From: Paragordius varius
Taxonomy: Eukaryota; Animalia; Nematomorpha
Assembly (NCBI GenBank): GCA_964247055.1
Contig: OZ176057.1
Span: 744,001-808,000, forward strand
DNA length: 64,000 bases
Direction of reading: 5' to 3'
Part shown: positions 7,521 through 60,269 of the stretch, in pieces
How the letters are laid out: each line of letters begins with the position of its first letter
Numbering within the stretch: the first letter of the stretch is position 1
The notes under the pieces: model-generated
Told to the model about the DNA's origin: nothing
The model's database searches: none
What the model saw: the letters and a program-made list of their open reading frames with translations, nothing else
Program-made: the position numbers and the translations under genes

Positions 7521-7594
7521 TATATACTTAATTTTGATATCAACTATATATATTTTTAAAAAAATGCATGCTTTCATAAATTTAATTTTTAGCC

Positions 7595-8760: not shown

Positions 8761-8763
<3 letters not shown>

Positions 8764-8802
<39 letters not shown>
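8764..8802. repeat. (TA)n microsatellite
   Basis: Uninterrupted TA run. Similar runs lie near 25691, 37260, 39075, 43088, 48897, 49860 and 61906. Confidence 0.95.
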
Positions 8803-8807
<5 letters not shown>

Positions 8808-9624
8808 TCTTTGATGAGAAGATCAGATATGAAACGGTTCCGGCATAAATTCATTCATTAGTGCTATTATAACCGAAAGACTGTCTTTAATCACAACTGA
8901 TATAGAAATTTTTTTGACAACATATACTTCCTAGAGATTAGTTTTAAACCATAAATAACTGCATTCATAAGCAAAATCGATTTTTATTTTGCTCTCGTCA
9001 AGTTACTGTTTTCTGCGAAATTACTAATCAAAAAATGTTAACCCACTCTATTGATTAGTTTTAATACGATTAAAAATCTCAAAATATCTTGTAATATTTA
9101 TATGCTTAAACTATTTATTTCGATGATTTTTATCAGGTTAAAATTTAAAGTTACCGTGGGCATAAAAAATGAGCAATTTTCGCAGGTAATTCGTCCGAAA
9201 TTTGGTCAACAGATAATTTTGTTTAAAATAATTTAGTATTGATAATTTATTGTAATAATATCAAAATGGTAAAATTAAATAATCTAAATTAGTGATAAAT
9301 ATACAATTTTTACATAATTTAAAGTTGTTTGGCTTGTGAAAAAAGGCTGTTAGATATTAAAGAAAATATATATACATACATATCAAATTGTGATTTAAAA
9401 ATACATTGTAAAATAAATAATTTTTTACACCAATATCAAATTTTTAACAAATTATTTTTTTCCAAGCATGAGGGGTGGCATAGGGGCCATAGTACTGTGT
9501 TTTCCTTTAATGTTGTACACAAACGGAAGTAAGAATTGCAATGGATCAATAGTCACCTATATAATAGATAATATTACAATTTTAAAATATTAAGTCCAAC
9601 GAATCTTAAAAATCTTTCAAAGTT

Positions 9625-15600: not shown

Positions 15601-16087
15601 GAGAACCACTGCCACAGAGGATATATACAAAAATAATTTTTCAAAAGTAGAAAATTTATACATTTTTTTCCCTTAAAATTCATAATTAAAAATTATATAT
15701 TACAGTTATTTTACCTCCAGAATGAATGGCTTTATCAAATTTTATTTCGGATCTGGATGATAATGAATCTTGAATATTGCGACTAGCGTCCACCTCCTTG
15801 GAACTTTGTTCTTCTTTTGTACTTTGGGAAGAACCGGTTAACAGTTTTTCTCCCGGGCTTTTTTGTGGCGATGAACCAGTTTCCCTAGCTATGCTCTGAG
15901 CATTGGTGTATGGAATTACAGGTATCAAACTTAATAACACAATTGTGATAGTAAAAATCAAGGGAAAAGTAAAGGAAAATGCACCGTTTGCATAATTTTT
16001 TGCCGAAATTCTAACCATTTTAGGTGGGCTTAATGGATCAATGTTTTTACGGTCACTGTGGAGAAATGTCTTATGAGGATCCAACAT
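9625..16087 (-). CDS. Secreted modular protein: Gly/Tyr-rich and Lys-rich regions, two lustrin-type Cys-rich domains, WAP domain, low-complexity tail (about 1094 aa)
   Basis: In-frame GT-AG chain: 16087-15715, 14794-14168, 13606-13361, 13055-12915, 12629-12492, 12190-11993, 11728-10982, 10894-10668, 10340-9929, 9800-9625 (3285 nt). Hydrophobic leader FTFPLIFTITIVLLSLIPVIPYTNA|QS. Domains: CSRGDP...CGPSEPPCPLTHEC...CC; CPDFTF...CRTNTSFNDCGSGFRC...CC; WAP KPGTCP...CGGSCLHDFSCPGSQKCCLSANGCPMC. The start codon (M1 vs M24) and the last exon are uncertain. Confidence 0.85.
13633..13821. mobile_element. Tc1/mariner-type MITE (CAGTAAAAATTG family), degenerate, in an intron
   Basis: AAAAATTGAAAATATACGGGTAAAACGTAAA...AAAAGACAACCAT is mirrored by ATGGTTGTCTTTTG...TTTTACTG|TA. 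Confidence 0.6.
15318..15611. mobile_element. hAT-type MITE (CAGTGGTTCCCAA family) in an intron
   Basis: TIRs CAGTGGTTCCCAA / TTGAGAACCACTG. Degenerate 8-bp flanks CGGTAGAG / CCACAGAG. The interior is similar to 21102-21328. Confidence 0.75.
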
Positions 16088-19767: not shown

Positions 19768-22700
19768 ATGAAGCAGGGTGGTAAATTTATCATTCGACCT
19801 CTACGAAGATTTTTGGGGAATAGTGCAAAGCTATGGTCGTTGTCCCTAACAACTCGTTTTACAACTATTGCAACATATATTCTTATCCTTACCACCTTGA
19901 TATGTTTACTAAGCAACCCTGTACATGGACAAAGTGATAATGATAACGTACATATTGATCCTTCCCACAGAAATTCTGGTGCCAGTAAGCACAGGAAAAC
20001 GCATGGCACTGGAGGGGGAAATAGCAATTCCGAGCTAGAGAAAAAACGATTGTATGAGGAAGCCAAATTAGTCATCGATTGGAATGAAGATGATGGACAA
20101 CATTATGCTTTCAAAGATCTTGCACAAGAAGAAATGGATTTGCCGCAAAACCGAGCAAAGCGTCAAATTCAACGCCGAGCCGTGGGAGACAGTTTACGCG
20201 GAAACGTTGGAGGCCAGAAGAAAGTTATAGCGCCCCGATTTTATCGAGACCGAAAAAGTGCCATTGACAGTACAGCTTGGTTGGCCAAAGGACCAACCAA
20301 AGGTCAAATTCCTGAAACGTTTGGTGTTGTGGATGAGGCGTATGGAGCCAAAGACCCGTTTCTAATGACAAATGTTGAACCACGCTTGTATGCATATCGT
20401 AAGAGCAAAGAAACCCCTGTACCTCCCAGACTTAACCCACCCAAAGTCGAACGTAAGTCATATAAATACTATATATATATATAATATAGCATTTTTATTA
20501 ATTCGTAATTCAAAAGATATATTTGACTATTTTTTTGCACAAATAATAAAATACTGTAAGAGTAAATATACATTGCTAATTTCTCATTTAACATGCCAGA
20601 GAGTGTATTCAGAGCGAAAAGTATTCTTATTGTCTTGTGGTAAAATAATAACTATGAATTAAAAATATAGCCCTTTGTTGTAAAATCTGGCAAATAATAA
20701 ATAAAAAATTAGTTATCTATACTTAGTATATTTATTTATATTTAGCGTATTTTGAAATTTATTTTTAATATAAACAAAATGTAAGGTAAAACCAAAAATT
20801 AGCTACTGAACTTTAGATTAGATCATATATATATCACAACATTTTGTGAATGTCTAATCAATATTCTTTAAAATAATCTAGCCATAATTTCCTATTGTGA
20901 AATTGGAAGAGCTCTGCATCAAAGATGCGGGCCCAAGGATGGCCCCTGCCCCAGTCTTTATCGTTGTGACATTGAACGAGAATGGGAAGACTATGGATAC
21001 TGTTGTCCTAGAAGTAATAATAATTCTAAAATATTTCATAATTGCAATTTATATATCTCAATTTTATATTTTATTTTTGTGTAAAATTGAATAAGTTAGA
21101 TCAGTGGTTCCCAACTTTTTTTCTTCACACCCCAATTTGTATTCTTTCACCCCCCTTGCCTCTTAAAAAAATCCAAGATACAATAAAATGATCAATCGAT
21201 GATCTACATTTTTTGAAATATATTTCCATATCGATGGAAATCTTGATAATTCGCACATTAAATTTGTTTCTCGTCCTATTTTTAATTTAATTCCTTAATT
21301 TGGGGGGCGTTGTTCTTCGGAAACACTGAGTTAGATGCATCTAAAATTTATCAATAAATTTATTTATTAATATTGCTGATGGTTGATTATAAAATTTTTT
21401 TTAATACATATATTTTATTTTTATTATATAGGTGATTTAATTTTAATTTTTTATTAAAAATTGAAATTATACGGATAAAAGATTAAGACTTTTTACCCTA
21501 GAAATAATACATTTTTAAAATAAGTATTTTTCAAAGTATAAGCCAAAAAAGGGTATGTTGTTTTAGTGTTTTTATAAAAAATAATCCTTACATAAGTTCG
21601 ATATTTCTTGTACAAGTTTTATCAGATTATAAAAAAATGTATTATTTTATATTTTTACACATTCACACCTAAGCCTTAAATTTTGTAAATATACAAAGAC
21701 AGATATTTTTTGCCAAAATACAATAATAATTTTTAAATCTTGATTTTTTAAATATAACTCATTTTTCGAAATGGCAAAGTGTTTTATAGAGATATTAATT
21801 AAATAGCTTATATAGGAAACATTAAGTATTGATAAAGATGCTTGTGTTTTGAAAAAAAATATTTGTCTTTATATTTTTACGTTTGTCCGTATAATATATA
21901 AATCATTTATTACTGATGTAAAATATATTATTGCTTTTGTTACCAATTTGCATCCCTGCTTTATACTCCGTTTAAAACAAAGAGAGTAGTTATATTGAAA
22001 TAAATTAAGATTTAAAAAGTATATACCGGTTATTTACAAAAATAATATTTGTTTTTATATTTGTACGTTTCACCTGGATAATTTCCATTTTTACTGGATA
22101 ATATATGTATAATTGATTTAAATATATATTTGCACAAATAAAATATTTTTATGTTTTTTATTTTTTCTGTAGCTGATATATGTGCGGATAGATCTATAGC
22201 ACTTCCCTTTAATTGCGGAAGTGGGATTCGATGTCCAACCGACTTCTATTGTACAGTTTCTTTCTTGGGTGTAACACGTAACAACAGTGGAATATGTTGT
22301 CCAAGTATAATATAGTTTTTAAAAAAATATATATAAATTATGATATTTTAAGTCACTGAGTAAATAAAATGGACTAGTTTCGGTACCAAAATACCCGCCG
22401 TTGTCAATAATTTTTAAAAGATTAATTTTTATGTGTTAGTATATTTTTATTCTTTGCTCTAAAAAATGATATTAAATAAATTTCAGTCAATGCAAATATA
22501 TAAATGTTACATTGGATTATTTTAGCAATGTGTGTTAACCAATTAATATTTATGTTGTTACTTAAGGTCAAAAAACTGGGTTCTGTCCCGCATCTACCAT
22601 CGTGCAAAATACGATAGATCTTACTATGCCAATTATATTGCCTGTATCTGGTTCTGGGACTTGTGTTGGCAGTTGTGTAACCGATTTTGATTGCCCCAAC

Positions 22701-24196
22701 ACCCAAAAATGCTGCAGTGATTCCCGGGGTTGTCGAGTGTGCACGGCTGCCCAAATATTTGTTGTGGAGAGTTTGATTCAAACCGGTAATTTATTTTTTC
22801 TGGCATGCCTGAAAATCTCATTTAATATGGAGGGGGATTTTTTGGAAAATAACTTTTTGATAAAACTGTTTTAATTTGCTATATGAAACATCTATTATAG
22901 CAAATTTAACAATATAGTATCACAATATTACTACAGTTCCAAAACAAGGGGGATTCATGTTGAAGTCGATTATATATGATGAGTTAAAATAATCTGTATA
23001 TACCACTGTAAAAATATTTAATTAAAAAAACTCCCAATAGAGCATACTTTTTGCTAAGATACATTTTTAGCATTCTATATGTAATATTTAATCGTACGCT
23101 AATTCTATAAACTATTTATGTTTAAGGCAATCTGACGCTAACCATAACGAATCCGGTCGGAATTCCGCTTGCAACTCTAACCGGAGGGGCCGCCGGGGCT
23201 CCCGGGGCTCCCCGTTTCAATTTAAATCAAATTCAAGCGAATCTTAGATCCCGGGCTCTATTTATGGCTCAACGACAAAGACTTGCCCGACGTCGGCAAC
23301 AACAGGCAGCGGCTGAACGGGTTAGAGGCGGTTCATCTGATGCAAATCAAAGGAGAGAGCCAATTAATAACACGGTTAATAGAAGGATTGTCCAACAACA
23401 ACAACCTACAGGTCCCACGGGTGGGGTATTAAACCCGGCTAAGGCCTTGGAACAAATTAAGCGTCTGGTCGACCTGAATCCATCCCTGAAACCTTTGTTT
23501 AGGACCTATCTTGAAAAAGATAATTCTGCTGCTGGTGAAGAAAACTCCTTAAGCCCCTCCTCAAATTTGGTTGAACCTGATCAAGGTGATATTAGTAAAA
23601 TACAAACGGCGAATTCGGCCCCCTCAGCAGCAGCGTCTAGTAGCTCAAGATTAGTGGAACAAAAATCGGACACAGCCGGTAATGATCTTTCTAAAGCGTT
23701 GCTACAAGCACGGCTACTGGCATTTTCTTCGCTTTTTGGTCTTACCAATACAGAATCGGCCGAAAAAACAGCTGAACTCCTACGGAGCATTGGAAGTGGA
23801 TCAACTGGAAATGAGGAATCCTCTAATGGTAACTCGCTTAATGCCTTACTCCTGCCCTTTTTAGCAGGTGCCGTGGGTAATAAGAAGGATATATCAAGTG
23901 GTACAAGCAATGCTAGTGCCTTAAAAAATGGCGTGGGAAAAAAGGTTGAAAACCTGATTGCCTCAAATTCGTTAGCTGAAAGCAACTCTCCAAACAAAGT
24001 AGCGAAAAATGCAGCATCGGCCCCAAAAGCTAAAGAACCATCAAAATTGTCACAACTGCCAGTTGAAAAGAGTAAAAAAATTGTGGCAGGCAAAAAGGGT
24101 ATAGCTATCGCGTCAGTCAGTGCAAATAATAAAAAATTGGTAGTGTCAAGCCCACAAAAACGATTTGGTTCTAGCAACCCTTTTAATTTAGTGTAA
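19768..24196 (+). CDS. Secreted modular protein, paralog of 9625-16087: two lustrin-type Cys-rich domains, WAP domain, Ser/Ala/Lys-rich tail (745 aa)
   Basis: Exons 19768-20452, 20882-21013, 22173-22304, 22567-22785, 23127-24196. All introns are phase-1 GT-AG (2238 nt total). Leader IATYILILTTLICLLSNPVHG|QS; furin-type RAKR. Domains: CEIGRALHQRCGPKDGPCPSLYRC...CC; CADRSIALPFNCGSGIRCPTDFYC...CC; WAP KTGFCP...CVGSCVTDFDCPNTQKCCSDSRGCRVC. Confidence 0.9.
21102..21328. mobile_element. hAT-type MITE in intron 2
   Basis: TIRs CAGTGGTTCCCAA / TTCGGAAACACTG with a perfect 8-bp target-site duplication AGTTAGAT (21094-21101, 21329-21336). Confidence 0.85.
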
Positions 24197-28732: not shown

Positions 28733-28997
28733 TGTAGTAAATCGAGAAACCGTAAAACAATAAGATTTATTGAGATAAAATGCAAAAAACTAAATTATAT
28801 ACAGTTTGCGATGTTTATATACTTTTTGTGAATATAATATTTACATGTTAAACCAAGGTAAAATAACATGTGCAGGTTAAATACAAAATTGATAATACAA
28901 TAGTTTAACTCATATATATAAGGTGAAATATATTCAAACCTAATATATAAATTGGTCTCGTCTAAGGTTAGCTAACTTGATGTATTCTAATCTATCA
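28733..28997 (-). repeat. 3' LTR (265 bp)
   Basis: Direct repeat of 32767-33028; reads TGATAGATTAG...TTTACTACA on the - strand. Confidence 0.95.
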
Positions 28998-31900
28998 TAT
29001 CTCCTAATCCAAATCCCAGCCGATCTGGTGCTTTTCTCTCCCTAAGAGGATATCTCCTTTCAGGTTCTTTCTCAGTTGTCTTTTCCGTCCTTATTTCAAC
29101 CTGGGTGTCTTTCTCGTTTTCTTTTTCTATGCTTGGTTCCTCCCCCACCTCCCGATAATTGCTTGTAATCTCATCATCTGTTTGGTTTATCGTTAAATTA
29201 TCATCCTCCTCTCCGCCGTCCTCGACTCCGGTCGGCCGTAATTGATCCGCATGCTTGCGAAGTGTTCGATTTCCATCTTTAACCGTGTACGAGAGTACCA
29301 CTGTTCTCTCCAAAACTGAACCTTTTCTCCACCCTGAATTGATTTAATTCTTTATGTGCACTTCTTCGTCCGGTCTAAAAACTTGATTGGGTATTATGTC
29401 GTCCTCTAATTGTTGTGCGGGTGTTTCCCTAACCCAAGAGAAGGGGGTATTAATATGTCTTTTCAGAAATAAGTTATACGGGCACTCTTTTGTGGCGCTA
29501 TGTACGGCGGAGCGATAACCCCATAACACTTGATTTATATTTTTGTCAGGAGTCAGCGTAGAATCCGTTAGCGATTTATAGTGTGCTTTTAAGGTGTAAA
29601 TGACCCGTTCCACCAGCCCATTTGTTCGTGGATGATAGGGGGCACTAGTGACATGTTTGATGTTTCTCGTTGCAGGGTATCTTTAAAATCCTTCGATGCA
29701 AAATATGATGCATTATCGGTAACTATCATTCGAGGAAACCCGTACCTTACACACCAAATTTCTTACCAATGTAGTATGTTTGCAGAATTAACAGTTCTTA
29801 GCAATTCGACTTCAACCCATCTGGAGCTACTATCGATAGCTACTAACCAATACAACCCATCTATAGGACCGGCAATATCAAGATGTATCCTTTCCCAGAT
29901 ACCCGTATTAAAATTCCATTTGTACGTTGGATTCCTTTTTATGTTACTCCGGTTTAACTGACACCCCATACAAGATCTCACATAACTTTCAATATCTTGG
30001 TTTATACCTGGCCAATAAACCCTAGCCTTGGCAGACTCTTTCATTCCATTAGCCCCCGAATGTCCAACATGCAAAAATTTTAACGTTTCGTTTCGCAACG
30101 CCCTGGGAATAAACAGACGATCGCCCCAATACAACAAACCATATGATTCTTTGTTACTTATACTCAATATCGAATTTAAAATTGGAGCTGACCAATCAAT
30201 ATGATGTAGAGCTTTTAATGTCATCAAAAATTCATCCCGTAAAGTATTTTCTTTCATTGGCTGTACGCTTAAGTTGTCAGTTGTTAGAAAGTTGATTTGC
30301 CTGGGTTGCTCCTCAACTTCCTCAGTCGGTTCTTCTTACGGTAGACGAGATAACCAATCCGCTAAATTTTCCGAACCATTAATATATTGTATAGTAAAAT
30401 TATAATCGGCTGTTCTGAGTATCCATCATACTAATCTACTATTGTTAATATTACTTAGATCTCTCTTAAAGCCAAACAACTTGATCAGGGGTTTATGATC
30501 GGTTAATAATACGAACTTTCTGCCATACACAAACATTTTAAATTTTTCTAGCGCATATAAAATTGCCTTTGCTTCTTTTTCAATTACCGAGAAATGTTGT
30601 TCTGCCTTCGAACATTTTCGAGACGCAAAAGCTATCGGCCGTTTTCCCTCACTTGTCATATGCGATAAGACTGCTCCGAATCCGTCATTCGATGCATCTG
30701 TTTCCAAGACTAACGGAAGGTTCGGGTTAAACGGTATTAAATATAATGCATTACTCACCAACAGTTTAGCTTTATCAAAAACCCTCTCTTCTTTTGTCGA
30801 CCAACACTATTTCTTAGAACCTGTGAGCGCATGTAAACCGCGATTGTAGCATGCAAAGATGGAATAAAACGAGCGTGAAAATTTAACATTCCCAAAAAAG
30901 ACCGAAGTGATGTTTTATTGGTAGGTGTAGGACAATTCAAAATTGCTTTTACTTTTTCGTTATCAGGTTTAATTCCTTTGTCTGAAGTTATATATCCTAA
31001 GTATGACACTGAGAAACGAGCTAATTGGATTTTATCCTTTTTAAATTTCAAACCCGCAGCAGCTAATTTGTTCAACACTTTTTTTAAATTATCCTTATGC
31101 TCCATTACCGTTGTTCCACTAACAATATCATCTAAGTAAACCGCTGTACCTGGACAATCTTTTAATAACTCATCCATAATTTGTCGAAATATCGTGGGTG
31201 CACCAGATATTCCAAATGGCAGTCTCTTAAATCGAAAAAGGCCTATATGTGAACTAAATGTGAGTAAATGTTGATAATCTTGGTGTATCGGCATTTGCTA
31301 GTAAGATTCTTTTAGATCTAAGGTCGTAAAAACTTTTTCTGCCCGATTTTAAACACTAACTGATCAAACGTTGGAATCAGATGATCTACAGGAACCAGAC
31401 TTGGGTTTAATGTAACTCCAAAATCACCACATATGCGAATATCATTATCATTCTTTTTAACTATCACCAACGGAGTTACCCAGCAAATTCGTGTTTGCGA
31501 GGGGTTTATGGACTCTATAATACCCAGACTTTCAAGCCTCTTTAATTCACTCTCCACCTTAGACTGAAGCGGAATAGGTACCCTCCTGGCTGCAAATCTT
31601 TTGGGGATACTCCCTTTTTGAGAAAAACTTGATGGGTGGTCCCGTGTAACACCCCATACCTTCACAAAACAAATCCTTAAATTTATTTAAATCCACGTAA
31701 TTAACATTTTTTACACATACAGCCTCTGGAAATCTGCATTCAAAACTTTTCATCCATGGTAACCCAAAAATGTTACTCCAATCAACCCTAGTAACCATAC
31801 ATTCCAACTGTTTGACCATACCATTCCATTTCAAATCTACCACGCATTGTCCCATCACCTCTACACCTTGATAGTTGAACCCAATTATTAGACCCGCGGG

Positions 31901-32726
31901 TGCTAAGGTCGGCCTTCCAATCTCCATCCACGTGCTTTTCCCAATCAATGATATTTGAGCTCCGGTATCGTACAACATCCTCACCCAATGGCCATTCAGA
32001 CTTGCTTGCGTTCGGGCTTCATTATTATTATTGTTACCACTCAGTATATTAACGCGCCGGTAACACCTGCCAAAATGACCACGTCCTTTGCATCGGTATC
32101 ACCTTGTTTGAAGCGGGACACCAGTTGTTCGCATGCACGTATCCACATTTTCCACATTTTTATCTTTTCATCATAACCTGCCTATTGTCGGGACCCTGAT
32201 CAATCAAACAACTGTCCGCCTTTTGGTACGCCATTGCCATTTCTACCACCATCTCCAACGTAACCGGTTTCCCATCAGCCATTGCATCTGGAAACTTTGT
32301 GAACAGATCTATTTCCAATCTTTTGAGTTGTAACCCTCCCACAAACCCATCTCTGATTCTTAGCCTTGCATCATGCCCAAAGTTGTACCGGGCAGCACAT
32401 TCCTTTACTCGAATTAAAAAATCCATCACTGATTCCGTGGCTTCCCTCTGGAGTTGCGTAAACTGGAACCTGGCTGCAAACACATTGAGCAAATATTTTT
32501 TCCCAGCTGCTACCAAAGCATCACAGCCCACTTTCTCTAACAGTACGGGATAAAAGAATTTCTTCAACTTTGGAATATGGGATAGACCAATGTAGGCCAA
32601 TAATAAGTTTTTTTTTGTTTCGTCATCTTCTGAAATTAATTTCACTTTTAACATTCTCTTTATATAATCGATATAATCATTAAAGCTAGTTGCGGGATCA
32701 TAGGTTTCCAGACTTAATTTCTCCAT
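28987..32726 (-). pseudogene. Frameshifted gag-pol
   Basis: gag MEKLSLETYDP... with CGKCGYVH..CPA and RCKGRGHFGRC knuckles; protease LYDTGAQISLI; RT WVTPLVIVKK...RICGDF and YLDD; RNase H LETDASNDGFGAVL, TDHKPL; integrase LHVGHSG...CMGCQ, WERIHLDIAGP. Broken into at least 8 ORF pieces. Confidence 0.93.
28998..29010 (-). promoter_or_regulatory. Polypurine tract
   Basis: GGATTAGGAGATA immediately precedes the TG of the 3' LTR. Confidence 0.7.
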
Positions 32727-32752
32727 GCGCGAATGTAATGATGTAAAAAAAA

Positions 32753-32764
32753 TCGACCGCGCCA
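32753..32764 (-). promoter_or_regulatory. Primer-binding site TGGCGCGGTCGA
   Basis: Lies 2 nt inside the 5' LTR and begins TGG. The implied G discriminator and GCGGTCG acceptor stem suggest tRNA-Ser (inference). Confidence 0.75.
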
Positions 32765-32766
32765 AA

Positions 32767-33028
32767 TGTAAATCGAGAAACCGTAAAACAATAAGATTTA
32801 TTGAGATAAAATGCAAAAACTAAACTATATACAGTTTGCGATGTTTATATACTTTTTGTGAATATAATATTTACATGTTAAACCAAGGTAAAATAACGTC
32901 AGGTTAAATACAAAATTGGTAATACAATAGTTTAACTCATATATAAAAGGTCATCAAAATGTATTCAAATCTAATATATAAATGGGTCTCGTCTAAGGTT
33001 AACTAACTTGATGTATTCTAATCTATCA
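32767..33028 (-). repeat. 5' LTR (262 bp)
   Basis: Direct repeat of 28733-28997, with several substitutions and three small indels. Confidence 0.95.
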
Positions 33029-34881: not shown

Positions 34882-37256
34882 TCAATCTTCATCTTGCGTT
34901 TCTATACAAATAAATAAATTTATATTATAATATATATTTTTCATTCAATAAAATTTTATAGTTAAAGTAAAATTAAAACGGACCAAATGTAAGGACAAAT
35001 AAAGGACAAACATATTTTTTTTCAAAAGACCATAGTCTATTTTTAAACTTAATTTTTTTAATATATATAACTTATTGTTTGAATTGCAAATTTATATTGA
35101 TAACACAATTATTTATGTATTTGTAATTAAATAATTAATAAAAAGTTCAAAGTCTTGTAGTTTTTACATTTTGTCATTTTAACTTTATGTTATTTATCAA
35201 AAATTTTATAAAATCAAATTTTTACCTGGTATAAAACAAGCTAAAAAATAGAAATATGAATATTAATTTTAAAAACAAATAAAACATTGGGTAATTAAGA
35301 TTTATGTTATATTACCTCTGACTAAATCTACAACACAAAAATATAATAATATAAGTTTAATATATATTTATATATGTAAAGTAATTATGGGTAATTTTTG
35401 ATCGGTTAAATATTGTTAGATAATAGTAAAAAATTTTTTTTTGATCCATCTATTTTACGAAAAAAAAAGTTTAAAACATATTTTTTATGGGGAACGAGAT
35501 TTAGTAGACGTTTAAAATGTGTCACACCAAACCCTGGTTGCATTTAAAATGTAAATTTAATTCTATGATTAGCTAAAAATAATCGGCAAAATATTTATAA
35601 TATGACTCAATTGAATGGAAGTATTATTACACTTTTTATCTAATATGAATTTTTTCAAATTTTAGTAATAGTTATATTAATTTCGAATTTATTTCTGCGG
35701 TTTTATTTGATAAATTTAGTCAAATACGCCGTAAACTCTTATTAAAATACCAAATGGCTGATATTAAACACTGTTTTCCTATATTCTTTATTATTATTTA
35801 TAAACAGTAAAAATTGAAATTATACGGACAAAATGTAAAAACAAATATTTCTTTTTAAAAGACAACCATACTTTTAAAACCTCAAATATTTTATATATAA
35901 CTCATTGTTTCGAACTCTACAACAAGGAATAGTGATGTAAATTGGTAAACAATCAATTATTCATTTTATAACTAATAGCATAGAAAAAATTAGGATTTAA
36001 AAATGTATGGTTGTTGTCTTTTAAATAAAAATTTTACATTTTGTCCGTATAATTTCGATTTTTACTGTAATAAGAAAATTTTTTTTTAAATCTTATACGC
36101 TAATGTAAAATGTATATTCTTAATTACGATTGACCCTCTTTTTATATATGAAATTATAATTTGTAAGGTAATCTAAAAAAAATATTTACCCATAAACCAT
36201 GCTAAAGATATCAACAAATAGAATATTAGATATTTTTTTAACATATATTTTATTTATTTTTTCCAAAAAAAGGATAATAAGTTTGAAAATATATACTCCA
36301 GGAGGTAACTACATACGATAAAAAATATATTATATTACAAATTTTTACTATATGGCTAAATTTTTTTAAAAAACTAAAAAAATTTAAAATTACCAATCAA
36401 TGGTCTTGGCCTACGTCTCCTATTATTGTCGCTATTAGATTTTTGAGAAGTATTGATTTGCATCGTGTTGATTTGGTCATGTAATTCTGCATAATACATA
36501 AAAATGTTTAAATTAATTTTTAGGTGTTTTAGCAACAAATTGTCCAATTGTATTTATATATGAGTTTTTTTTAGAATTTTATAATGGAAATATAGATATT
36601 CAATTAAAATAAACAATGATTATGAAAATTCGGGATATACAATATACTTTCAATGATGAGAGACAGCTTTTTCATTTAAAAGATAAAGAATTTTTTATAA
36701 TTTAATTTTATTTTATGACTATGTCCTCATATCGAATGATGAATATTTTTTTTCCACATAAAATTTTTACTTATAGATATCATTTTTTAAATTTTTTATG
36801 ACGCCATAACACGTAGTTTAAAAAATGTTAGCTACAAAGATCGAATTTATGACAATAAAGTATAATATATCCACAAATGGCATTTTGATCTCAAAGCTTA
36901 GTATATTTTTATCTGCGATTAACTTGAAGCCCAACAGTTAAAAGGTTTTTAAACTAATTTTAAAAAGATTTTTAATATTCTCTTTTTAAGCCAAAATTTA
37001 ATCAAAGATAAAATTGAATACAATTCACCCTTAAACTCTTAAAATTAACCCACCCTTGAACATTTAAAATTCCTCCTAAAAAAATTATTTTGGGCTTATT
37101 TAAAGTCCTTCCATATTGATATGAATATTTTTATAGATTACTTTTTCTGATGTTACTTTAAACAAAATTTCAATTTTATAAAAATATCAAAGAAAAACAT
37201 GAACTGTTGAGGGGTCAAATGGAATTGTTTAAGGGTGAAATTTAAAAATGTAAATG

Positions 37257-37296
<40 letters not shown>

Positions 37297-39070
37297 ATTA
37301 CCATGGATGTTATCTGCAAAAAGAGAATTATATATTTTATAAATGATATAATCAAAATAAAATTAATAATTTTTAAATGGGTAGTTGGTAATACCTTGCA
37401 TCATAATGATTCTTTGATTAAGAGCTACATGTTGCAATAATATACAGGTAAAATTAAAAGTTAAAAATTAAATTAATAGACACATAAAAAATGTTTATAA
37501 TTTTTTTTTTAAAATATCTCTGTAAGAAAATAGACTAAAATAAAATTTGGGTTAAAAAAATAAAAAATAATAATAAAAATCTTACTGGTCATAAGTGAGA
37601 TCATTTCTCCAAATTGATCTGTTGACAATCTTTGACGAGCTAATTTGAAAAATAAAAAAACGGTTAAAATTATATTTTATATTCTAATATTTTTTGGTAA
37701 TAAATAAATTGCGATAAATTTTTGTAAAATACTTTGTGGTGGTGATCTGCGGATTCTGAGTATTCGGTTTGAAATTTCTGATTTAATTGATTCCACTTTA
37801 TATGTTTGAAAATTATCAATTGATGAGTATACATGGATCTTGAGAGGTCCTGATAGAATAATAATATATTGATATATTTTACATATGTAAAGCGCTTAAT
37901 GAAAATTACTCATAATCAAAAAACAATGCTATATTATGAAGCAAAACGATAATTTTAAAAGTGAATCGCAGTTTATTTTAAACTTCAGTAAAAAGTGAAA
38001 TTAACTTCCCGAAAAAAGGTAAAAATATAAAGACAAATATTTTTTAATAAACAACCATACTTTTTTAAACTTAATTTTTTCCTTCATATTAATTGTGTTA
38101 TATAATTTCTAATTTTAAAAATGATTTTAATCTAAAAAAATCGCAATCAGTGTGGTGGCCTTTTGAAAAATCATATTTGTCTTTCTTTTTTTACATTTGT
38201 GAAATTTTAAAATTTTAAAACTATGTTATAACGGTGAATTGGAATAAAAAATGACCCAAAGTTTTTTGCTTAGCGATCAATTTATAAGCTTTTAATTTTA
38301 TCCGTTTTTTTCCAATTTGCTCTTTTATTTTACTATTGTGTTACGCCATATCTCCTAAAATTTACTGTTTAAGATTAAAATATTGGTGGAGACATTATAT
38401 TAAATTTACCTAAAGAGGTATTAGTTGCATTTGCGACAAATATCCAAGCTTTTGTATCGCCGAGCGATTTGAAAAAGTTGACATCTTTGCTAAACAATTT
38501 GCCATATACCACGGATTCATTATACTTTTCTAAAAAAAATTAAAATTAATATAAATACAACATTGGATATTATCTGTAAATGGTTAAATGCGTTATTAAA
38601 GAAATTCTTTCAAAATCTTAAATAAAGATAATAATAAAATATTTGTGTTGCAGATTTAAAAAATTGTTTTTAAATTTGATTATACCTCATGAGGTATTTG
38701 AAAAATAATCGGCCTATTAAAGTAAATACAATAAAAGATAATTAATAAAGGTAAGAAATGGCCAAGTTTAAAATTATTGGCTCTTAATTAAAAGATTTAT
38801 TAAGATATATATCGATTACATACTCCTTAAAGCAAATTATTACTTATTTAAGGTTAATTAAAATATGTGAAGTACGCTGAAAAATATTGGATAGAACTTT
38901 CTGTAAAATTACCCTATATATTTTAAATAACACATAAATGAAGCTTTAAAACTAAAAAAATAAAATAATTAAAACATAAGTTTACCATTTAGTGCTTGTT
39001 GGCTGGTTATACATATGATACCGAATGTTTGAGTTGTGTTTATTTCAAAGTTGATTTTATAACTGCAAGC

Positions 39071-39111
<41 letters not shown>

Positions 39112-39864
39112 CTATCAAAAAAACCTAGACTAAATGTTTTTAACTGGTTAAAGATCCTATATCAGAGTTTTCATATATTGGGATTTTAAATTTTAGTATT
39201 AATAGAGCGTTAATGCATGAAAATTATTTCAATAATTTTCTATAAATATTTAAAATTTTAATATATTTCATGGAAAAATTTAGAGAGTTTTTGTCAAAAA
39301 GCGGTTTTAAACAATAAAACTATTATGAATGATTATTTCGCTTATTTCAATGAATAAAAAATTGTTTTATTGTGTATAATTTTTTTTGATTTTTTGTATA
39401 AATTATTTAATCATAAAATTATTACATGATATAAAAAATAATTGTATAAATATCAAAAAAAATTAATTATACTTATATCTGCTTGTGTTGCATCCTGGGT
39501 GATTTTGGCTCTTTGTGATTCACTTACTATAAAAATGCAAATGATAAATACAGTAAAAATTGAAAAATATACCAAATAAATGTAAAAATTAAGTAGACCA
39601 AAAATATTTTTTCTAAAAGACATCCATATTTTTTAAACCATTTTTTGGGGGCGTCATAAAACATGAAATAGAGATCACACAATTAACAAATTAATTTTAT
39701 AGCCCTATTTTATACATTTTTAATTTTTACTGAATTAAAGGTAAATCAAAACCCTGAAAATTCAAAAAAACAAAATTTATCAACAAAATTAAAAAAATAT
39801 AATAAATACTTTTAGCTTGAATCAATCCAATACCAATCGAAAGAATCAAATATGACAATAACAT
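34882..39864 (-). CDS. Micro-exon-containing secreted protein, 14 exons, 229 aa, no family recognised
   Basis: Exons 39864-39810, 39526-39473, 39069-38986, 38529-38410, 37849-37733, 37639-37586, 37424-37395, 37313-37302, 36486-36394, 36308-36297, 36201-36190, 35327-35316, 35240-35226, 34901-34882. All introns are GT-AG phase 1; total 690 nt, stop-free. Protein: MLLSYLILSIGIGLIQAK ISESQRAKITQDATQADI TCSYKINFEINTTQTFGIICITSQQALN EKYNESVVYGKLFSKDVNFFKSLGDTKAWIFVANATNTSL GPLKIHVYSSIDNFQTYKVESIKSEISNRILRIRRSPPQ TRQRLSTDQFGEMISLMT TLNQRIIMMQ DNIH ELHDQINTMQINTSQKSNSDNNRRRRPRPLI VTSW TWFM DLVR ACFIP ETQDED*. Exons 1-9 are well supported; exons 10-14 are more tentative. Confidence 0.72.
35805..36067. 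mobile_element. Tc1/mariner-type MITE (CAGTAAAAATTG family), 263 bp
   Basis: About 70-bp TIRs CAGTAAAAATTGAAATTATACGGACAAAATGTAAAAA...AAAAGACAACCATAC and the mirror image ending TTTTTACTG|TA. Confidence 0.8.
37022..37242. mobile_element. Small MITE-like element in an intron
   Basis: AATTCACCCTTAAAC ... GTTTAAGGGTGAAATT inverted ends; no TSD confirmed. Confidence 0.4.
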
Positions 39865-41516: not shown

Positions 41517-43085
41517 GTGATCCACATATGTGGAATATTTCGAAACATTATTTGATCTGATAGGAATTTTAAAAAGGTGCATACCATACTAATTTATTGT
41601 GTACTTGGGGGAAAAATCGATTTAAAAAATTATTTTTGCGGACTTTGTTTTGTAAAAGAATGGCATACGGGGCGAGCAGGTAAAAAGAGGGCCTAAATCA
41701 AAAAAGCGAGACGACTATGATCGGTTTCAATCGAAAATAACAAAACAAAAATCATATTTGATGCATAATCCAACACGTTCTCCAGAATATTGTCTCAAAC
41801 ACACGTTTGTGGACTTCTGTTTTTAAAAATCCCGTTTTTCACACGGGGTGGGCCCCAACTGGAGGCCTATTTCAAAAAAAGGGCGAAGCTATTGTCGGGG
41901 CATTCATTAATGATTATATTTTTTCCGAAGTTTGGATTTGAATGGTTCTACCGGTTTCCCAGTACTAGATCACAAAGCCAGCATTTTCCATTTTTATAAA
42001 TATATAGATTACCACAAATAATGTTTTATTATCCATATATTTACATCCTATACATATGATAGATACTCCTTACCCGCAGCTCATCAAAGAAACGCTTGAC
42101 TAAAATTTTTGCCTTTTAACGGGGAATACGTGGAATCCATATTGAATTTTTACGGTCTCACACCTAGGGCAAAAAATAGATTTAAAAAATTATTTTTGTG
42201 GACTTTGTTTTTTGAAAAAAAATGGCATTTTACGGGGGTAGCGGATAAAAAGAGGGCCTAAATCAAAAAAGTGAGTCGATGTTCGGCGCAAAAATAAGTA
42301 AACAAAAATCATATTTGAAATTGAATGGTCCATCACGTTCTCCAGAAAATTGTCTCAGAGACACGATTTTAGACTTCTGTTTTCAAAAAAACCCGTTTTT
42401 CACACGGGGTGGGCCCGAACTGGGGGCCTATTTCAAAAATCAGGCGAAGCTATTGTCGTGGCATTCATCAATGATTATATTTCTTCGAAGTTTGGATTTG
42501 AATGGTTCTACCGGTTTTTCGGTGCGAGATCACAAAGCTAGCATTTTCCATTTTTATAAATATATAGATTACCATAAATAATATTTTATTATCCATATAT
42601 TTTTTAACATCCTATACATATGATAGATACTCCTTACCCAGCAGCTATCATCAAAGAAACGCTTGACTAAAATTTTTGCCTTTTAACAGGGAATATGTGG
42701 AATCCATATTGAATGTTATTTTGAAAAAAATGGCATTTTACGGGGGGAGCGGGTAAAAAGAGGGCCTAAATCAAAAAAGCGAGACGACTATGTTCGGCGC
42801 AATCGAAAATAACTAAACAAATCATATTTGATATTGAATGGTCCAACACGTTCTCCAGAAAATTGTCTGAAAGACACGATTTTTGTGGACTTCTGTTTTC
42901 ACAAAAAAACCGTTTTTTACACGGGGTGGGCCCGAACTGGGGGCCTATTTCAAAAAACAAGCGAAGCTATTGTCGTGGCATTCATTAATGATTATATTTC
43001 TTCGAAGTTTGGATTTGAATGGGTCCACCGGTTTTCCGGTACCAGATCACAAAGCCAGCATTTTCCATTTTTTAAAATATATAGA
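41517..43085 (-). repeat. Three head-to-tail copies of the Helitron 5' end
   Basis: On the - strand, A|TCTATATATTT..AAAATGGAAAATGCT restarts at 43085, 42568 and 42008 (periods 517 and 560 bp). The last unit continues into sequence specific to the short Helitron form (compare 53780-53880). Confidence 0.85.
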
Positions 43086-43521
43086 TAATATATATATATA
43101 TATATATATATCATAACACACTTTGCCATTTCAAACAATGAGTTTAACTAAAAAAATCAAGATTTAAAAATTTTCATTGTGGTGAAAAATATTTGTCTTT
43201 ATATTTTTACGTTTTGTCTATATAATTTCAATTTTTACACTATATCTTGTGGTATCAAAATTCATTTTAATAAATTCATTCAATTATAGCTAGATAATTC
43301 CAATATTAATAAAATAACGTTTCAGCGTAAACAATATCCAATAATTTTCTTTATGTTTTTAACAATTTGTCTGTATAATTCTAATTTATACGTTGGGATG
43401 AAACACATCTCATCCTACTATTTGGGTTGTGCTGGTTTTCGAATGTAATTAAGAAATGGTAGATCTATTATCTACTTTAAACTCATTTCTGATTATTTTA
43501 AGTGTTTTTGTTATTTTTTAC

Positions 43522-52800: not shown

Positions 52801-55352
52801 TTAAAAACCTGCATTTTAATCTCATACTGTATCGCTTTTCTGTATTTTTTTTAAAAGCATTAACCTTAGATTTTATCGAAAAAATTTATTTGTCAATGTA
52901 TAATCTATTTTTTTTCAAAACGTTTATTTAATATTAAAATAATAAATATAAAACTTGAGTTATAAAAAATGTTCGGCATCATCAATTAAACAGAATCTTT
53001 TTTGTTATCTTAAATTATTTTTATCATTGTTCCACCATTCTTTATAATAATATAAAAAATTTTTTTTACATAACTTATTGTGGCCAAATCTTTGCATTTA
53101 CCTAAAATTTTTAAGTTCGCATATATTTTATATGCATTTTAATAGTTGCTTGTTTCAAACTATAATTGGGCAATTTGGATTACAATAGTGTTTGGAATCA
53201 CAACAAAATGTTGAAAAAACTATTTTTTTAAATGCCAAGTATCAAATAATATAAGCAACCATTAAAATCCATACTGTTATACCTTTTTATTCATAATATA
53301 TTTTGATAACAAAGCATACTTTTATCAAATATTTATATTTAGCCATATATTTAAAATGAGATTTATTTTCAAATATAAATATCTATATATTTATAAAAAT
53401 GGAAAATGCTGGCTTTGTGATCTGGTACCGGAAAACCGGTAGACCCATTCAAATCCAAACATCGAAAAAATATAATCATTAATGATTGCCCCGACAATAG
53501 CTTCGCCCTTTTTTGAAATAGGCCCCCAGTTCGGGCCCATCCCGTGTGAAAAACGGTTTTTTTGAAACAGCACAAAAATCGTGTCTTTGAGACAATATTT
53601 TGGAGAACGTGTTGGATAATTCATTTTCAAATATGATTTTTGTTTATTTATTTTCGATTTCGCCGAACATAGTCGTCTCGCTTATTTAATTCAGGCCCTC
53701 TTTTTACCCGCTCCCCCCGCAAAATGCCATTTTTTTCAAAAAAACAAAATCCACAAAAATAATCTTTTAAATCTATTTTCCCCGCAAGTACACAATAAAT
53801 TAGTTTGAATGCACCGTTTTAAAATCCCTATGAGATCATGGCTATTAAATGTTTCGAAATAATCCACATATGTGGATCATTTTATTGTCTCTTTTTTCAG
53901 ATAACCCCCCCCCCCCTCCCAACAAAAAGTCCGAAGGACTTCCTCGAGCTGCGTAGCAGCACGAGATTTACGCTAGTATATATATATATAATATCTTTAT
54001 ATATGTACATAATATATAGATTTGTGCCAATGCCAGATTTATTTCTTATCAGATACTTTGTGCAATCGGTGTTTCCAAAAACAGCAAACCACAATTGATT
54101 ACAGATAAATTTCAATACGAAAATATGTTTAACAATTCATATTCATCATTCAATAAAATATTAAAAGGAAATATTGTAATGCAAACCAATGCCTTTGAAA
54201 ATTTAACCAAATCGCTGGTTGGCAGATAATAATTTGAAATATTAACTATATCATTTTAGAATTACAATAAATGAATTATTTGCATTATGCATTTCGATAT
54301 TATATAGCTATTATTTTTGTTGGGTTGGGGTCTTTCAACCCTCTTATGAATGCAGTACAGTATAAATTAAATTATATGGACAAAACATAAAAATATATAA
54401 TTTTTTTTCAAAACGATATACAATTTTTAACTTTCAAGATATCCATGTTTTTGCAAAGTAATAAAGTGTTAAGTGGTAAATCAATATCAATTATATAATG
54501 TAAGTTGTAATTTAATAGTAATATAGAGAAAATTAAGGTTTAAAAAGTATGATTGTGTTTTGAAAAAATTTTCTCTTTTAGTTTTAAAGCTTTGCTACCA
54601 ATTTTTACTATAATGATATTATGATTTATGTTGGGTCCGGTTAATGCAAATAGTGTTTTCCAAAGGATGAGAATATCCACAAAAAATCTAAAATAATTTA
54701 ATGAAATAATAAAATTATCAATTGTTGGCTTTAAGACAATAATTTTAACAGCAGATAAAGTTTTGATTTCATATTCCAAAGCGTTGTAAAAACATTCAAA
54801 AATATACCAACTATAGTCTCACACCTTTTTTAGATAAGCATCTTAATTAATCCGGCCTGAGTGATATTGAAGATTTTCAAGGTTCCCGAAATTCGTGTAT
54901 TTTAATTCTGAAACATATGTTGGTTAATCCATAATCAATTATATTTAACATTTATAATGCGCCGAACGTAGTCACCTGTTTACGTTTTAATTAAGCTCCT
55001 GTCTTGTCTGTATTTAGACTAAGAAATTTTCTTATCTGATACACCATCAGAAAAAACTAAAGTGAGTGACTCTCTACCCTATTTTTCCGGAAATGGTACA
55101 AGATCTAGCGAATTTAATATTTACTATTTCAAAACAAAAATTTAGTCAAAGTTTTTTAAAATGGTAAGGGCCGAACCCATGTTGACATGCTTGATTAAAA
55201 TAACTAAGCCTTTATCTTTACCAATTAGGATCGCAAATGAAGTAAGTTAGATGCTGTATAAATTAATCAAACGCTTTTAAACTAATTTTTAAGTTAGTGC
55301 TAAACATTAGTCACGTCACCTATAATATTAACGTTACTGAGAACATTTCTTC
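47602..55352 (+). CDS. Candidate small-exon gene (or two genes), product unknown, model incomplete
   Basis: Phase-consistent chain A: 47602-47658, 47760-47828, 48969-48982, 49048-49118, 50003-50064, 52235-52290, 52486-52549, 52635-52655. Chain B: 54020-54175, 55018-55061, 55146-55163, 55229-55241, 55294-55352. Several donors are GTAAGT/GTGAGT/GTAAGG and the exons coincide with GC-richer islands. No start, stop or A-B junction was closed. Confidence 0.4.
48162..48439. mobile_element. hAT-type MITE, degenerate
   Basis: CAGGGG...ACACCCCTG ends. The interior (ATATGGGC.TTAACAAATATT...TTTTAACATTT..GCTAG) is shared with 50791-51072. Confidence 0.55.
50791..51072. mobile_element. hAT-type MITE, same family as 48162
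   Basis: CAGGGTGTCCAACA ... TGTTGAACACCCTTG inverted ends. Confidence 0.6.
53382..53976 (+). mobile_element. Complete non-autonomous Helitron, short form (595 bp)
   Basis: A|TCTATATATTTATAAAAATGG 5' end. 3' hairpin CTCGAGCTGCGTAGCAGCACGAG (53943-53965), then ATTTACG, CTAG (53973-53976) and |T(AT)n. Confidence 0.85.
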
Positions 55353-55890: not shown

Positions 55891-57619
55891 GCTATTTGTG
55901 TTTCTGATCTAAACGATTAAACAAATATATAAAAGTATATTCTTTTTTTCAGATTATACAAACTAAAAACCTTGTCATTGTAAAATATTTATTACTAATG
56001 TTTGCTTAAAATAAACAATTATATAACCTTGGCAATGTCAAAAAAACGATACATCTTATTTCTGTGAAAATATTTTTAGATCAACCTTGATATATAGTAT
56101 CACGATGATTGTTCAATATATGATTTTATTAAAACTTTGTTCAAAAAAAGGCAATTTTTTCCCAAATATATATTGCAAAGTATTTTCATATAAATATTAA
56201 GCAGGGTAACACAGGCTTAGTGGGACGGTGTTGTTACTAGATTTAAACCGATAAACAAAATTAAGCAAAAAATATGTTTTTTTCCAAATGGATACTCATA
56301 TTCAAATAACTTTCTTAGAAGTATATCAATTTTACTAAGATTACATGATCATATTTTTGTCGATTGTGCTTTTCCATATAATTTGCAAGCCGTGCGTGTT
56401 AAGTGGGCCGCATACTGACACCATGCTTTATAGACTCTTTATTTTAATATTTTTATTTCTAATTTTGCAAATTTTCATAAAAACACGGTATAAAACAATT
56501 TAAATTATGTTTAACCTAAAATTCTAATATCCTCTAAAATATTTATTATTTGTGTTAGTTATAAAGCATAAAACTTCGTATTAAAATAAGATATTACCTA
56601 AACAAATAATTTTCATATTTGTGATACTCATGTTTGTTTTGACCCAAACAATCTATTTTTGGATGATAGTTCCATTTATGATGGGTTAAGTAAATTTAAA
56701 CAAATGTATAAGTACAGCGACTACACTTGTTAAAATATTTTTTTTTATTTATTTTAACAAATCTAAATTTTAAAAATGAATATTCTATTTATCCTATTGA
56801 TTGGAATAGCAATCCTCGCAAATGTCACCTCTTTGATATCAAGTATATTGCAGCAATTTTACTAATAGTGTTTTACAAGGTTCCATTTATAACAGTAAAA
56901 ATTGAAATTATAGAGACAGTTGTAAAAAACTAATTTAATATTTCAACTTAATTATTTAAACAAAACTTTTCGATTTGGGTTCGAAATAAGAATTAGATTT
57001 ATGAATTGGTAAACAGATATCATATCTTCTTTGTAATTTTATAAAAAAACTAAGGTTAAAAAAGTAAAGTATGGATCTTTAAAAATTGACTTTCGAGTTT
57101 AATTGTTTTTTGTATCATTTTATTTATTCACCAATTTTTTTAAATATATACTAAAATTTAATATTAACTAAAAGTATTTTTAAAAATGCATAGTTTTTTT
57201 CAAAAATTAAATTTTTAGCAAATATTACATACTGAGTCATGTTGAAAACGGTTTATAAACGCTATTAGATATTATAAAAAACACTCTATCTATATAATTC
57301 AATATTGCTGAACATTAATGTTGTTTCAGAATTTAATTAATATATTTTTATCTTCAAATTTTTTGAATAAAAATGAATATACAAAAATGCACCAAAATAT
57401 TTATGCAAACGAACATCTAATTTAAAATTTTGAGGCAAAAGAATTCTTCAACATATTTAGAAAATTTATATCATATTTGAAAGCGTTTTTCGGCCGTTTC
57501 CATCATGACTTATAATAGTATAAGCTTCAAATAATTTGCTAGAAATCGAATTTTGAAAAAAGTATGCATTCATTAAAATATTTTTAGTTGATATCAAAAT
57601 TTAGCGTTCATATAAAATT

Positions 57620-59167: not shown

Positions 59168-60269
59168 TAGGGGCGGGCAAACGGTAGTCCGCGGTCGACT
59201 TCATGATTGCTTAAAAATTTTTTACAATGTAAAAGACATTTTGCATAGATTTTTTTCCACCAATTTATAAATAATCTTTATTAACTTATTTTAATGTTGC
59301 GTTTGAAAAATTTTACTTATCAACAAAAATAAGCTAATACATTATTTTTTAAAATATTTATTTTATAAAAAAGTGAGCAGATTCAGAATAGTTTGATAGA
59401 CTTAATACCACCGTATATTATTCCAACTTTAAATCATTTGTTATCCTTAAAAGTAGTTTGAATTTAGCAAAAAACAGAATTAGGTATCCTTTAAACTTAT
59501 ATTATTTAATTAAATTAAAGCGAAAAATTGCTAATATTTTGTATAGAAATGATCGAGAAAAAGATTATTTTTTTATAATGAATAATAATATAGGCAAGTT
59601 TTCTAAAAAGCAAATGTCCAAAAACATTTTTCTACGCTTCACATAAATTATCAATAATTCATATTCGCAAATCAAAAATCAAGATAAAAGGGCAATTATA
59701 TGCTCACAAATAGTGCATAATCAAAAAATCCATAATTACATCTTACATATCAATCGCAACAAATCTTTTCAGAACAGGGAAAGAAACTTGGAAAGATGTT
59801 TATTAATTAAGCTCAAAGCTGTTCGCAAATTATGAAGACAAAAAGAATTTTATAGAATCAATAGAGAACTTATCTTCATTTAGCGGCACAATTATGCGGA
59901 GAGGTAAAGATCAGAATCTTACCGATATTTTGCATGAAAAGATTAAATCTTGTATTTTTTTCGCTTCAAATTGACGAATCCACCGATTATGTTTGGATTG
60001 CTTTATTATGCGTTTTTTGTACTGATTATGGCAACCAGAGGTCTTCTGAAACATTATTTATGCGTTTTGATAATATTAAGATTACCTATAAAAAAAACTG
60101 CTAAAATTATTTTAAAATAGCTTGTGCCAGTCAGCAGTGGAGACGTAAATGAAAATATTTGCATCATTTGTGTTGAAGTGATAAATGAATTTTTCATTAC
60201 TTAATATTCATACATGCTGCTCGAGTGCATCCCAAAAAAGTAGCTTGCTGTAAAAAATGGCCACCACTG
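59168..60269. mobile_element. Old hAT-type element, about 1.1 kb
   Basis: TAGGGGCGGGC / GGCCACCACTG imperfect TIRs with 8-bp flanks AAATAGAC / AAATAAAC (7 of 8 identical). Confidence 0.55.

Follow-up and report, generated by a model that had tools for sequence, protein, structure and literature searches.

The stretch analysed here, referred to below as the window, comprises 64,000 nt of Paragordius varius contig OZ176057.1 (positions 744,001 to 808,000). We propose that its minus strand carries, between positions 39864 and 34882, a real, single-copy and lineage-restricted gene for a secreted coiled-coil glycoprotein, hidden from open reading frame (ORF) finding, and we assign this reading as a whole a probability of roughly 0.6. 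The first nine of its 14 predicted exons very probably represent a real coding unit. They are supported by the coincidence of peaks in GC content, frame-specific codon scores, splice junctions, features of the predicted protein and a continuous heptad run, all of them independent of the absence of stop codons along the chain. The gene appears to be a composite, with a conventional body and a micro-exon tail, rather than a full micro-exon gene (MEG), since micro-exons contribute only about 13% of its coding sequence.

Exon anatomy and coding signal

The initial annotation had described a stop-free chain of 229 residues over 14 exons, without giving its strand. Splice-like sites and open segments were read off as belonging to the minus strand, and AG/GT boundaries combined with the described exon lengths allowed the chain to be rebuilt exactly, from 39864 down to 34882, as the single solution recovered. 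The model is 690 nt long and consists of 229 codons and a TGA, with no internal stop (local script). Its exons and associated signals are listed below. Percentiles compare splice sites with decoys, using matrices built from exons 1-9 only, while codon scores are log-odds values trained on long ORFs elsewhere in the window versus the introns of this gene.

39864-39810, minus strand: exon 1, 55 nt; ATG and a signal-peptide-like hydrophobic stretch; phase-1 donor GTATTT, 90th percentile of decoys
39526-39473, minus strand: exon 2, 54 nt; linker of hydrophilic character following the predicted signal peptide; GC peak of 0.47; codon score +15.1 in the model frame
39069-38986, minus strand: exon 3, 84 nt; opens the probably beta-rich N-terminal domain, with two Cys and one N-glycosylation sequon
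38529-38410, minus strand: exon 4, 120 nt; domain core with three sequons; GC peak of 0.44; strong splice sites; single copy
37849-37733, minus strand: exon 5, 117 nt; end of the domain and RIRR furin-type site
37639-37586, minus strand: exon 6, 54 nt; coiled coil begins here; preceded by a 93-nt intron; junctions possible in phase 1 only
37424-37395, minus strand: exon 7, a 30-nt micro-exon; coiled-coil heptads; unique junction solution
37313-37302, minus strand: exon 8, a 12-nt micro-exon; four residues holding the heptad register; 81-nt intron upstream; strong acceptor, donor GTAATT
36486-36394, minus strand: exon 9, 93 nt; closes the coiled coil and contains one sequon and the RRRR site; codon score +14.8; single copy
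36393, minus strand: exon 9 donor, a perfect phase-1 GTAATT, 98th percentile of decoys
36308-36297, minus strand: exon 10 (tentative), 12 nt; 85-nt intron upstream; acceptor at the 92nd percentile, weak donor GTATAT at the 46th
36201-36190, minus strand: exon 11 (probable), 12 nt; 95-nt intron upstream; acceptor at the 99th percentile, donor at the 90th
35327-35316, minus strand: exon 12 (probable), 12 nt; acceptor at the 91.5th percentile, donor at the 96th
35240-35226, minus strand: exon 13 (probable), 15 nt; 75-nt intron upstream; acceptor at the 98.5th percentile, donor at the 98th
34901-34882, minus strand: exon 14 (tentative terminal exon), 20 nt including TGA; acidic end; acceptor at the 98.5th percentile
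36379-36377, minus strand: alternative stop TAG, reached after six more residues if the exon 9 donor is left unspliced; open frame 36499-36377
34822-34817, minus strand: AATAAA, a possible poly(A) signal 59 nt after TGA; weak, as the motif is common in AT-rich DNA

The symmetry described for this chain is present throughout, with a length divisible by three in all 12 internal exons and phase 1 in all 13 introns. In addition, the final base of every exon is A or G and never T, so that any internal exon could be skipped without a frameshift or a stop at the new junction. In this sense, the architecture permits cassette variation. Internal exons have a mean length of about 51 nt and half of them (6 of 12) are of ordinary size; exons of up to 36 nt represent 6 of the 12 by count and 93 of the 690 nt (13%) of coding sequence. 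Five introns (93, 81, 85, 95 and 75 nt) form the narrow 75-95-nt class noted previously, although the location ascribed to them, next to the tiny exons, applies to only four, which adjoin exons of 12-15 nt, while the 93-nt intron adjoins the 54-nt exon 6. The region had also been characterized as devoid of a useful ORF, and the gene does escape ORF finding, as no exon is longer than 120 nt and intron GC content is only about 15-20%.

Composition and codon usage both distinguish the exons from their surroundings. The window represents AT-rich eukaryotic DNA, with a GC content of 21-39% in 2-kb bins and about 22% across the gene region. GC content is 0.27-0.39 in exons versus 0.13-0.22 in introns, and a 45-nt profile has its main peaks at exons 2-6 and 9; other peaks correspond to a miniature inverted-repeat transposable element (MITE), an inverted repeat and sequence outside the gene. 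Summed over exons 1-9, the codon log-odds score reaches +68 bits in the model frame, compared to -1 and -28 in the other two frames. Long exons score 3-4.5 standard deviations (sd) above intron segments of equal length, as illustrated by exon 4 (+11, null -27, sd 9). GC content explains part of the codon signal, but not the difference between frames.

Concerning the junctions, all GT/AG pairs compatible with the flanking open frames were enumerated, and the junction of the model scored best at every intron. For introns 2, 5, 6, 7 and 8 the enumeration gave solutions exclusively in phase 1. This phase is usually a minority intron class, phase 0 being in excess (PMC8001218), and we estimate the chance of eight consecutive phase-1 introns at ~0.3^8, about 7e-5, if phases are independent. 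Leave-one-out scores of the confident splice sites lie mostly at the 87th-98th percentile of decoys, and an in-frame stop is located five codons upstream of the ATG.

Two (TA)n runs were observed immediately next to splice sites. One of them (39071-39111) is directly upstream of the exon 3 acceptor, at the place where a polypyrimidine tract would be, and the other (37259-37293) follows the donor of the 12-nt exon 8 at a distance of a few bases. Splicing could be affected if these microsatellites vary in length.

At the protein level, the first exon specifies Met and a 16-residue hydrophobic stretch (mean Kyte-Doolittle value 1.97, residues 2-17), followed by small residues at positions -3/-1, before a Lys. 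By simple hydropathy, this resembles the signal-peptide-like start proposed for this exon. Further downstream, residues 153-184 display ten consecutive hydrophobic a/d heptad positions (five heptads) in a run that spans junctions 6/7, 7/8 and 8/9, and none of 5000 shuffles of that region reached this number. The run is destroyed when the 12-nt exon 8 is left out, and drops from 10 to 7 positions without the 30-nt exon 7. As the heptad check is independent of splice-site reasoning, exons 7 and 8 are the best supported among the tiny exons. From their role in the heptad register we infer that they are constitutive by design, which leaves only the tail exons as plausible cassettes.

Tail exons and the predicted product

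Codon scores are uninformative for exons of 12-15 nt, and evidence for the tail (exons 10-14) comes from splice sites and spacing. Segments counted as strict candidates when they had a pyrimidine-rich tract followed by a YAG acceptor, a length between 6 and 33 nt divisible by three, a phase-1 open frame and a GTA donor. The 1.2 kb following exon 9 contains five of them, while the mean in 37 control chunks of the window with a GC content of at most 26% is 0.65 and the maximum 3, indicating 8-fold enrichment. The five tail acceptors rank at the 91.5th-99th percentile of decoys, and the four donors at the 46th, 90th, 96th and 98th, which resembles the leave-one-out scores of the confident sites. 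When thresholds were set at these tail values, 13 site pairs were obtained across both strands of the window (128 kb; ~0.06 hits per kb), including the training exons 7 and 8 and the tail exons 12 and 13; exon 11 narrowly misses the donor threshold. Tail introns (85, 95 and 75 nt) match the confident short introns (81 and 93 nt) in length. The last four or five tiny exons can be considered plausible, not certain. Exons 11-13 are probably real, and the chances are about even that exon 10 is real and that the right last exon was chosen in exon 14. The four tail exons of 12-15 nt would be the sole MEG-like cassette region of the gene. One more candidate exon, 27 nt long (36064-36038), was rejected because it falls in a MITE terminal repeat.

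Using the matrices of this gene, very strong acceptor/donor pairs around short symmetric segments were also observed on the minus strand at 60086-60100 (scores 8.3/9.2) and 55996-56004 (scores 8.1/5.2). These 9-15-nt segments are possibly micro-exons of another minus-strand gene at 55-61 kb.

The complete product would have about 212-229 residues (~24 kDa), starting with a 17-residue signal peptide and a short hydrophilic linker. The subsequent N-terminal domain of about 100 residues (exons 3-5) looks beta-rich and would be compact, with two Cys and four sequons. It would continue into the furin-type RIRR site and the five-heptad coiled coil (exons 6-9), which has the fifth sequon near its end and is followed by the RRRR site and a short tail, mostly hydrophobic and then acidic. 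In total, the mature predicted protein has five N-X-S/T sequons, two RX[KR]R sites (RIRR and RRRR) and an isoelectric point of 9.0, while Cys residues occur only at positions 38, 56 and 220, without a CYC motif. The coiled coil would drive the formation of dimers or trimers, and RIRR and RRRR, which bracket the helical part, may serve as sites of proprotein-convertase cleavage or trimming. From these features we infer that the product is likely a secreted and glycosylated protein that oligomerises via its coiled coil. An N-terminal domain of p24/GOLD or SEA type was considered and dropped, as no profile supports it.

Weighing the gene model

Several observations weigh against the gene as modelled. 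In simulations based on a second-order Markov model of this sequence, open AG..GT segments of at least 80 nt form about 14 clusters per 5 kb, and the plus strand of the same region holds 11 such clusters. A stop-free chain alone is thus not beyond chance in this composition, and it was dropped as a statistic because segments of this kind are too common to be informative. The splice-site matrices have just 8-9 sites behind them. In the tail, loose AG..GT criteria shrink the excess of candidates to 17 versus 10 in controls, the exon 10 donor GTATAT is weak (46th percentile), and read-through of exon 9 encounters a stop after six codons (36379-36377). Moreover, 15 strong acceptors are located between 36393 and 33500, several of them followed by short open frames, and the terminal exon is therefore not unique.

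Database searches add to these points. The gene stretch was found in none of the runs on record as RNA, and matches in three presumed transcriptome runs labelled as the same species were limited to spurious AT-rich stretches of 20-35 nt. These negatives are absence of evidence and do not show the gene to be silent, as the stage may be wrong. Homology was searched exon by exon. No match was obtained in Pfam for exons 3, 4, 5 and 9, no usable one in the ESM Atlas for exon 4, and none among PDB sequences for exon 5 at E up to 10. Among 1.84 billion representative proteins, there was no homolog of exon 4 and no annotated or transcript-derived protein containing it. These results agree with the initial annotation, in which no homolog was recognised. 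Three matches of exon 4 (18 bacterial Ig-like domains; GNLIGTD-type / beta-helix-type repeats) were rejected as chance, their scores being sums of many weak repeat matches. A search of this genome for paralogs, which had been proposed as a check, was negative as well: exons 4, 5 and 9 have none in the 110.6-Mb, 44-contig assembly, indicating a single-copy gene, and the 5' region detected only a 48-nt AT-rich match.

Short DNA contigs of this locus were also found in a sequencing run labelled as another organism, here termed organism B. Some of them are identical across exons 9, 10 and 11 and their introns, and others differ by about 4%. Exons 2-4 show eight substitutions, two synonymous and six non-synonymous, and no stop or indel; these substitutions do not reveal purifying selection, and eight are too few to test selection. 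Exon 2 accumulates five changes in 54 nt versus about five in 166 nt of flanking intron, a density about three times as high, and four of the five, within 17 codons, change the amino acid. The linker behind the signal peptide may thus be evolving fast, although the numbers are too small for a test.

It is also conceivable that the gene is real, with exon 9 as its last exon. In that case the donor at 36393 would be unused, the TAG would be reached six codons on, and the tail exons would be chance site pairs, reducing the gene to nine exons with only two micro-exons. An open frame indeed runs past exon 9 to this nearby stop, the donor of exon 10 is weak, the tail exons have no usable codon signal, and loose criteria usually allow a chain of tiny symmetric exons to be traced through AT-rich DNA, as in the comparison with controls given above. 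Such an ending is nevertheless unlikely considering the perfect GTAATT donor of exon 9 at the 98th percentile, the 8-fold enrichment of strict candidates in the tail, the recovery of exons 12 and 13 in the window-wide scan with its background of ~0.06 hits per kb, and the tail introns, which belong to the same 75-95-nt class as the confident short ones.

Another explanation regards the locus as a full MEG. In MEGs, most of the coding region resides in very small symmetric exons of about 6-36 nt (PMC4350168), and these genes have been reported as restricted to platyhelminths (PMC4350168; bioRxiv 10.1101/2023.06.21.545858). MEGs of Schistosoma have in common with the gene described here a first exon with a signal peptide (a signal-peptide-like start in the present case), internal exons in multiples of three with introns of the same phase, and runs of 12-15-nt exons, predicted ones in the present case; both are missed by ORF-based and standard gene callers, both belong to a parasite and both have copies of transposable elements in their introns (PMC4350168; bioRxiv 10.1101/2023.06.21.545858). 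They differ in the share of tiny exons, which make up most of the coding sequence in Schistosoma MEGs and 13% here, where the body is built of 54-120-nt exons. They also differ in that exon-wise searches found no sequence similarity, that there is no gene family, and that the host is a nematomorph and not a platyhelminth. Splice variants and gland expression are further features of MEGs.

In a full MEG, regulated skipping of micro-exons would generate variant secreted proteins at the host-parasite interface. This would be in accordance with exons that are all symmetric, in phase 1 and never T-ended, making each skip safe with respect to frame and stops, as well as with the signal-peptide-like start, the parasitic organism and the finding that exon 2 is more changed than its flanking introns in organism B contigs (small numbers). 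We consider it improbable, because the proportion of micro-exons departs from the defining feature of MEGs (PMC4350168), skipping of exons 7 and 8 would damage the coiled-coil register rather than vary the protein, exons 4, 5 and 9 and the 5' region gave no gene family in the assembly, and the locus is in none of the RNA runs on record. The MEG-like variable secreted protein of the initial annotation is hence retained as regards its secreted appearance and symmetric phase-1 exons, but its MEG-like and variable character is not supported.

The product could also be membrane-anchored, with an 18-residue hydrophobic stretch, composed of the end of exon 9 and exons 10-13, as its C-terminal anchor. 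The second-highest 19-residue hydropathy window (1.22) is indeed located there, at residues 204-222. An anchor is, however, still less probable, as the stretch is short, moderately hydrophobic and contains Asp and Arg, and as it depends wholly on the unproven tail exons. In addition, RRRR would be luminal and the acidic end cytoplasmic, contrary to the positive-inside rule, which is established for the orientation of membrane proteins. Finally, the absence of any gene, due either to chance assembly in AT-rich non-coding DNA or to decay into a pseudogene, would suit the high frequency of open AG..GT segments of at least 80 nt, the failure to find RNA, a homolog or a paralog in the searches made and the mostly non-synonymous differences in organism B, but it is very improbable in view of the coincidence of GC peaks, codon scores, best junctions in one phase, signal-peptide start and heptad run (0 of 5000 shuffles), and of zero stops or frameshifts in the window or in organism B variants.

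Genomic surroundings and known systems

The initial annotation had taken the genome to be apparently different from that of Schistosoma, and the mitochondrial sequence of the assembly corroborates this. In contig 44, cox1 contains TGA codons that are read as sense, which identifies the contig as mitochondrial. Within 5980-10320, the contig contains zero-loop palindromes with arms of 131 nt and 97 nt and, upstream of cox1, a tandem array of about ten 72-nt units, each with a 49-52-nt hairpin. With the invertebrate mitochondrial code, at least the palindrome with 97-nt arms and the hairpin array are traversed by open frames, and the array is in one open frame continuous with cox1. Long inverted repeats inside mitochondrial protein-coding genes are described for Nematomorpha (PMC6649704); the coding palindromes are consistent with this phylum and are no proof of it.

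Introns of the gene harbour several repeats, the most complete of which is the following.

35804-36068, no strand assigned: MITE-like element (~265 bp) in the 862-nt intron 11; terminal inverted repeats of 37 nt that are 97% complementary

Partial copies of this MITE occur near 34970-35060, 38014-38220 and 39550-39640, in three other introns of the gene. In the run of organism B, coverage of the MITE stretches is in the thousands, indicating that the family is very abundant in this organism too. Another inverted-repeat element (37020-37240; arms contain TTCACCCTTAAAC / GTTTAAGGGTGAA) is located in the 815-nt intron 8, and the GC peak in this intron is due to it and does not represent an exon.

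The neighbourhood seems to be rich in secreted-protein genes, judging from two segments that match the WAP four-disulfide-core domain (Pfam PF00095) at 11907-12158 on the minus strand (E 5.5e-6) and at 22602-22874 on the plus strand (E 2.9e-6), from signal-peptide-like ORFs at 15686-16087 (minus) and 19768-20484 (plus), and from a Gly/Tyr-rich ORF at 14151-14729 (minus). A single-exon ORF of 687 codons (4730-6793, plus) matches the rhodopsin-type seven-transmembrane family (PF00001, E 6e-11) and has a very long third loop; no relative was detected in a protein search through 5.8 billion clusters. Located 2 kb downstream of the gene is a Ty3/gypsy-like retroelement (28987-32816, minus) with several ORFs (reverse transcriptase PF00078, integrase zinc-binding PF17921), and a second reverse-transcriptase fragment is found at the window end (62968-63345, plus). 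Four copies of an unknown repeated ORF family were observed at 940-1167 (minus), 42279-42581 (plus), 42828-43116 (plus) and 53391-53630 (minus). They share motifs such as SPENCL..DTI and SWHS..IIF, have no Pfam match and are probably an uncharacterised transposable element.

Among known genes, the best architectural match is the schistosome venom-allergen-like 6 gene, SmVAL6, which combines a conventional multi-exon domain with very small symmetric exons (PMC4350168). It differs from the gene described here in its domain, as neither SCP/TAPS nor any other known domain was found in the latter (Pfam, exons 3, 4, 5 and 9). Bicycle/megacycle effector genes of aphids encode secreted proteins, as the present gene probably does, and have many small internal exons, nearly all of which start at codon position 2 ('exon phase 2', equivalent to phase-1 introns); they evolve fast, have no detectable homologs and require manual annotation (PMC9168663). 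Bicycle genes are, however, composed of about 17 exons on average, mostly micro-exons, have CYC motifs and form large families, while the present gene is single-copy and has three isolated Cys and no CYC motif. It follows the same phase rule, but its internal exons average about 51 nt and half are of ordinary size. Phase-1 introns beside the signal peptide and throughout the gene are also characteristic of class 1-1 modules of metazoan extracellular proteins (the exon-shuffling rule), and the phase-1 bias of such proteins has long been known (PMC8001218). In those modules phase-1 introns bound whole folded domains, whereas here they interrupt one domain and the coiled coil at intervals of 4-40 residues, and no known shuffled module was detected in Pfam.

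No paper linking hairworms with micro-exon genes was found in the searchable literature, where the architecture is known only from flatworm MEGs and hemipteran bicycle genes. By analogy with these, horsehair worms might have evolved micro-exon cassettes independently, in which combinatorial tail exons of 4-5 residues (one helical turn) would vary an oligomeric secreted glycoprotein acting on the insect host. Such a scenario is improbable; if true, convergent cassettes would be a third origin of splice-generated effector variation in a parasite lineage, beside flukes and aphids. The gene, a single locus that no RNA run was found to contain and that is MEG-like only in part, has modest weight of its own. 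Its anatomy implies that secreted-protein genes of this genome will escape both ORF-based and standard gene callers, and its coiled coil illustrates that inclusion of a 12-nt exon can be argued from protein geometry alone, via the heptad register. If transcripts confirm the model, the locus would add a composite case to the known systems, with a conventional body and a micro-exon tail.

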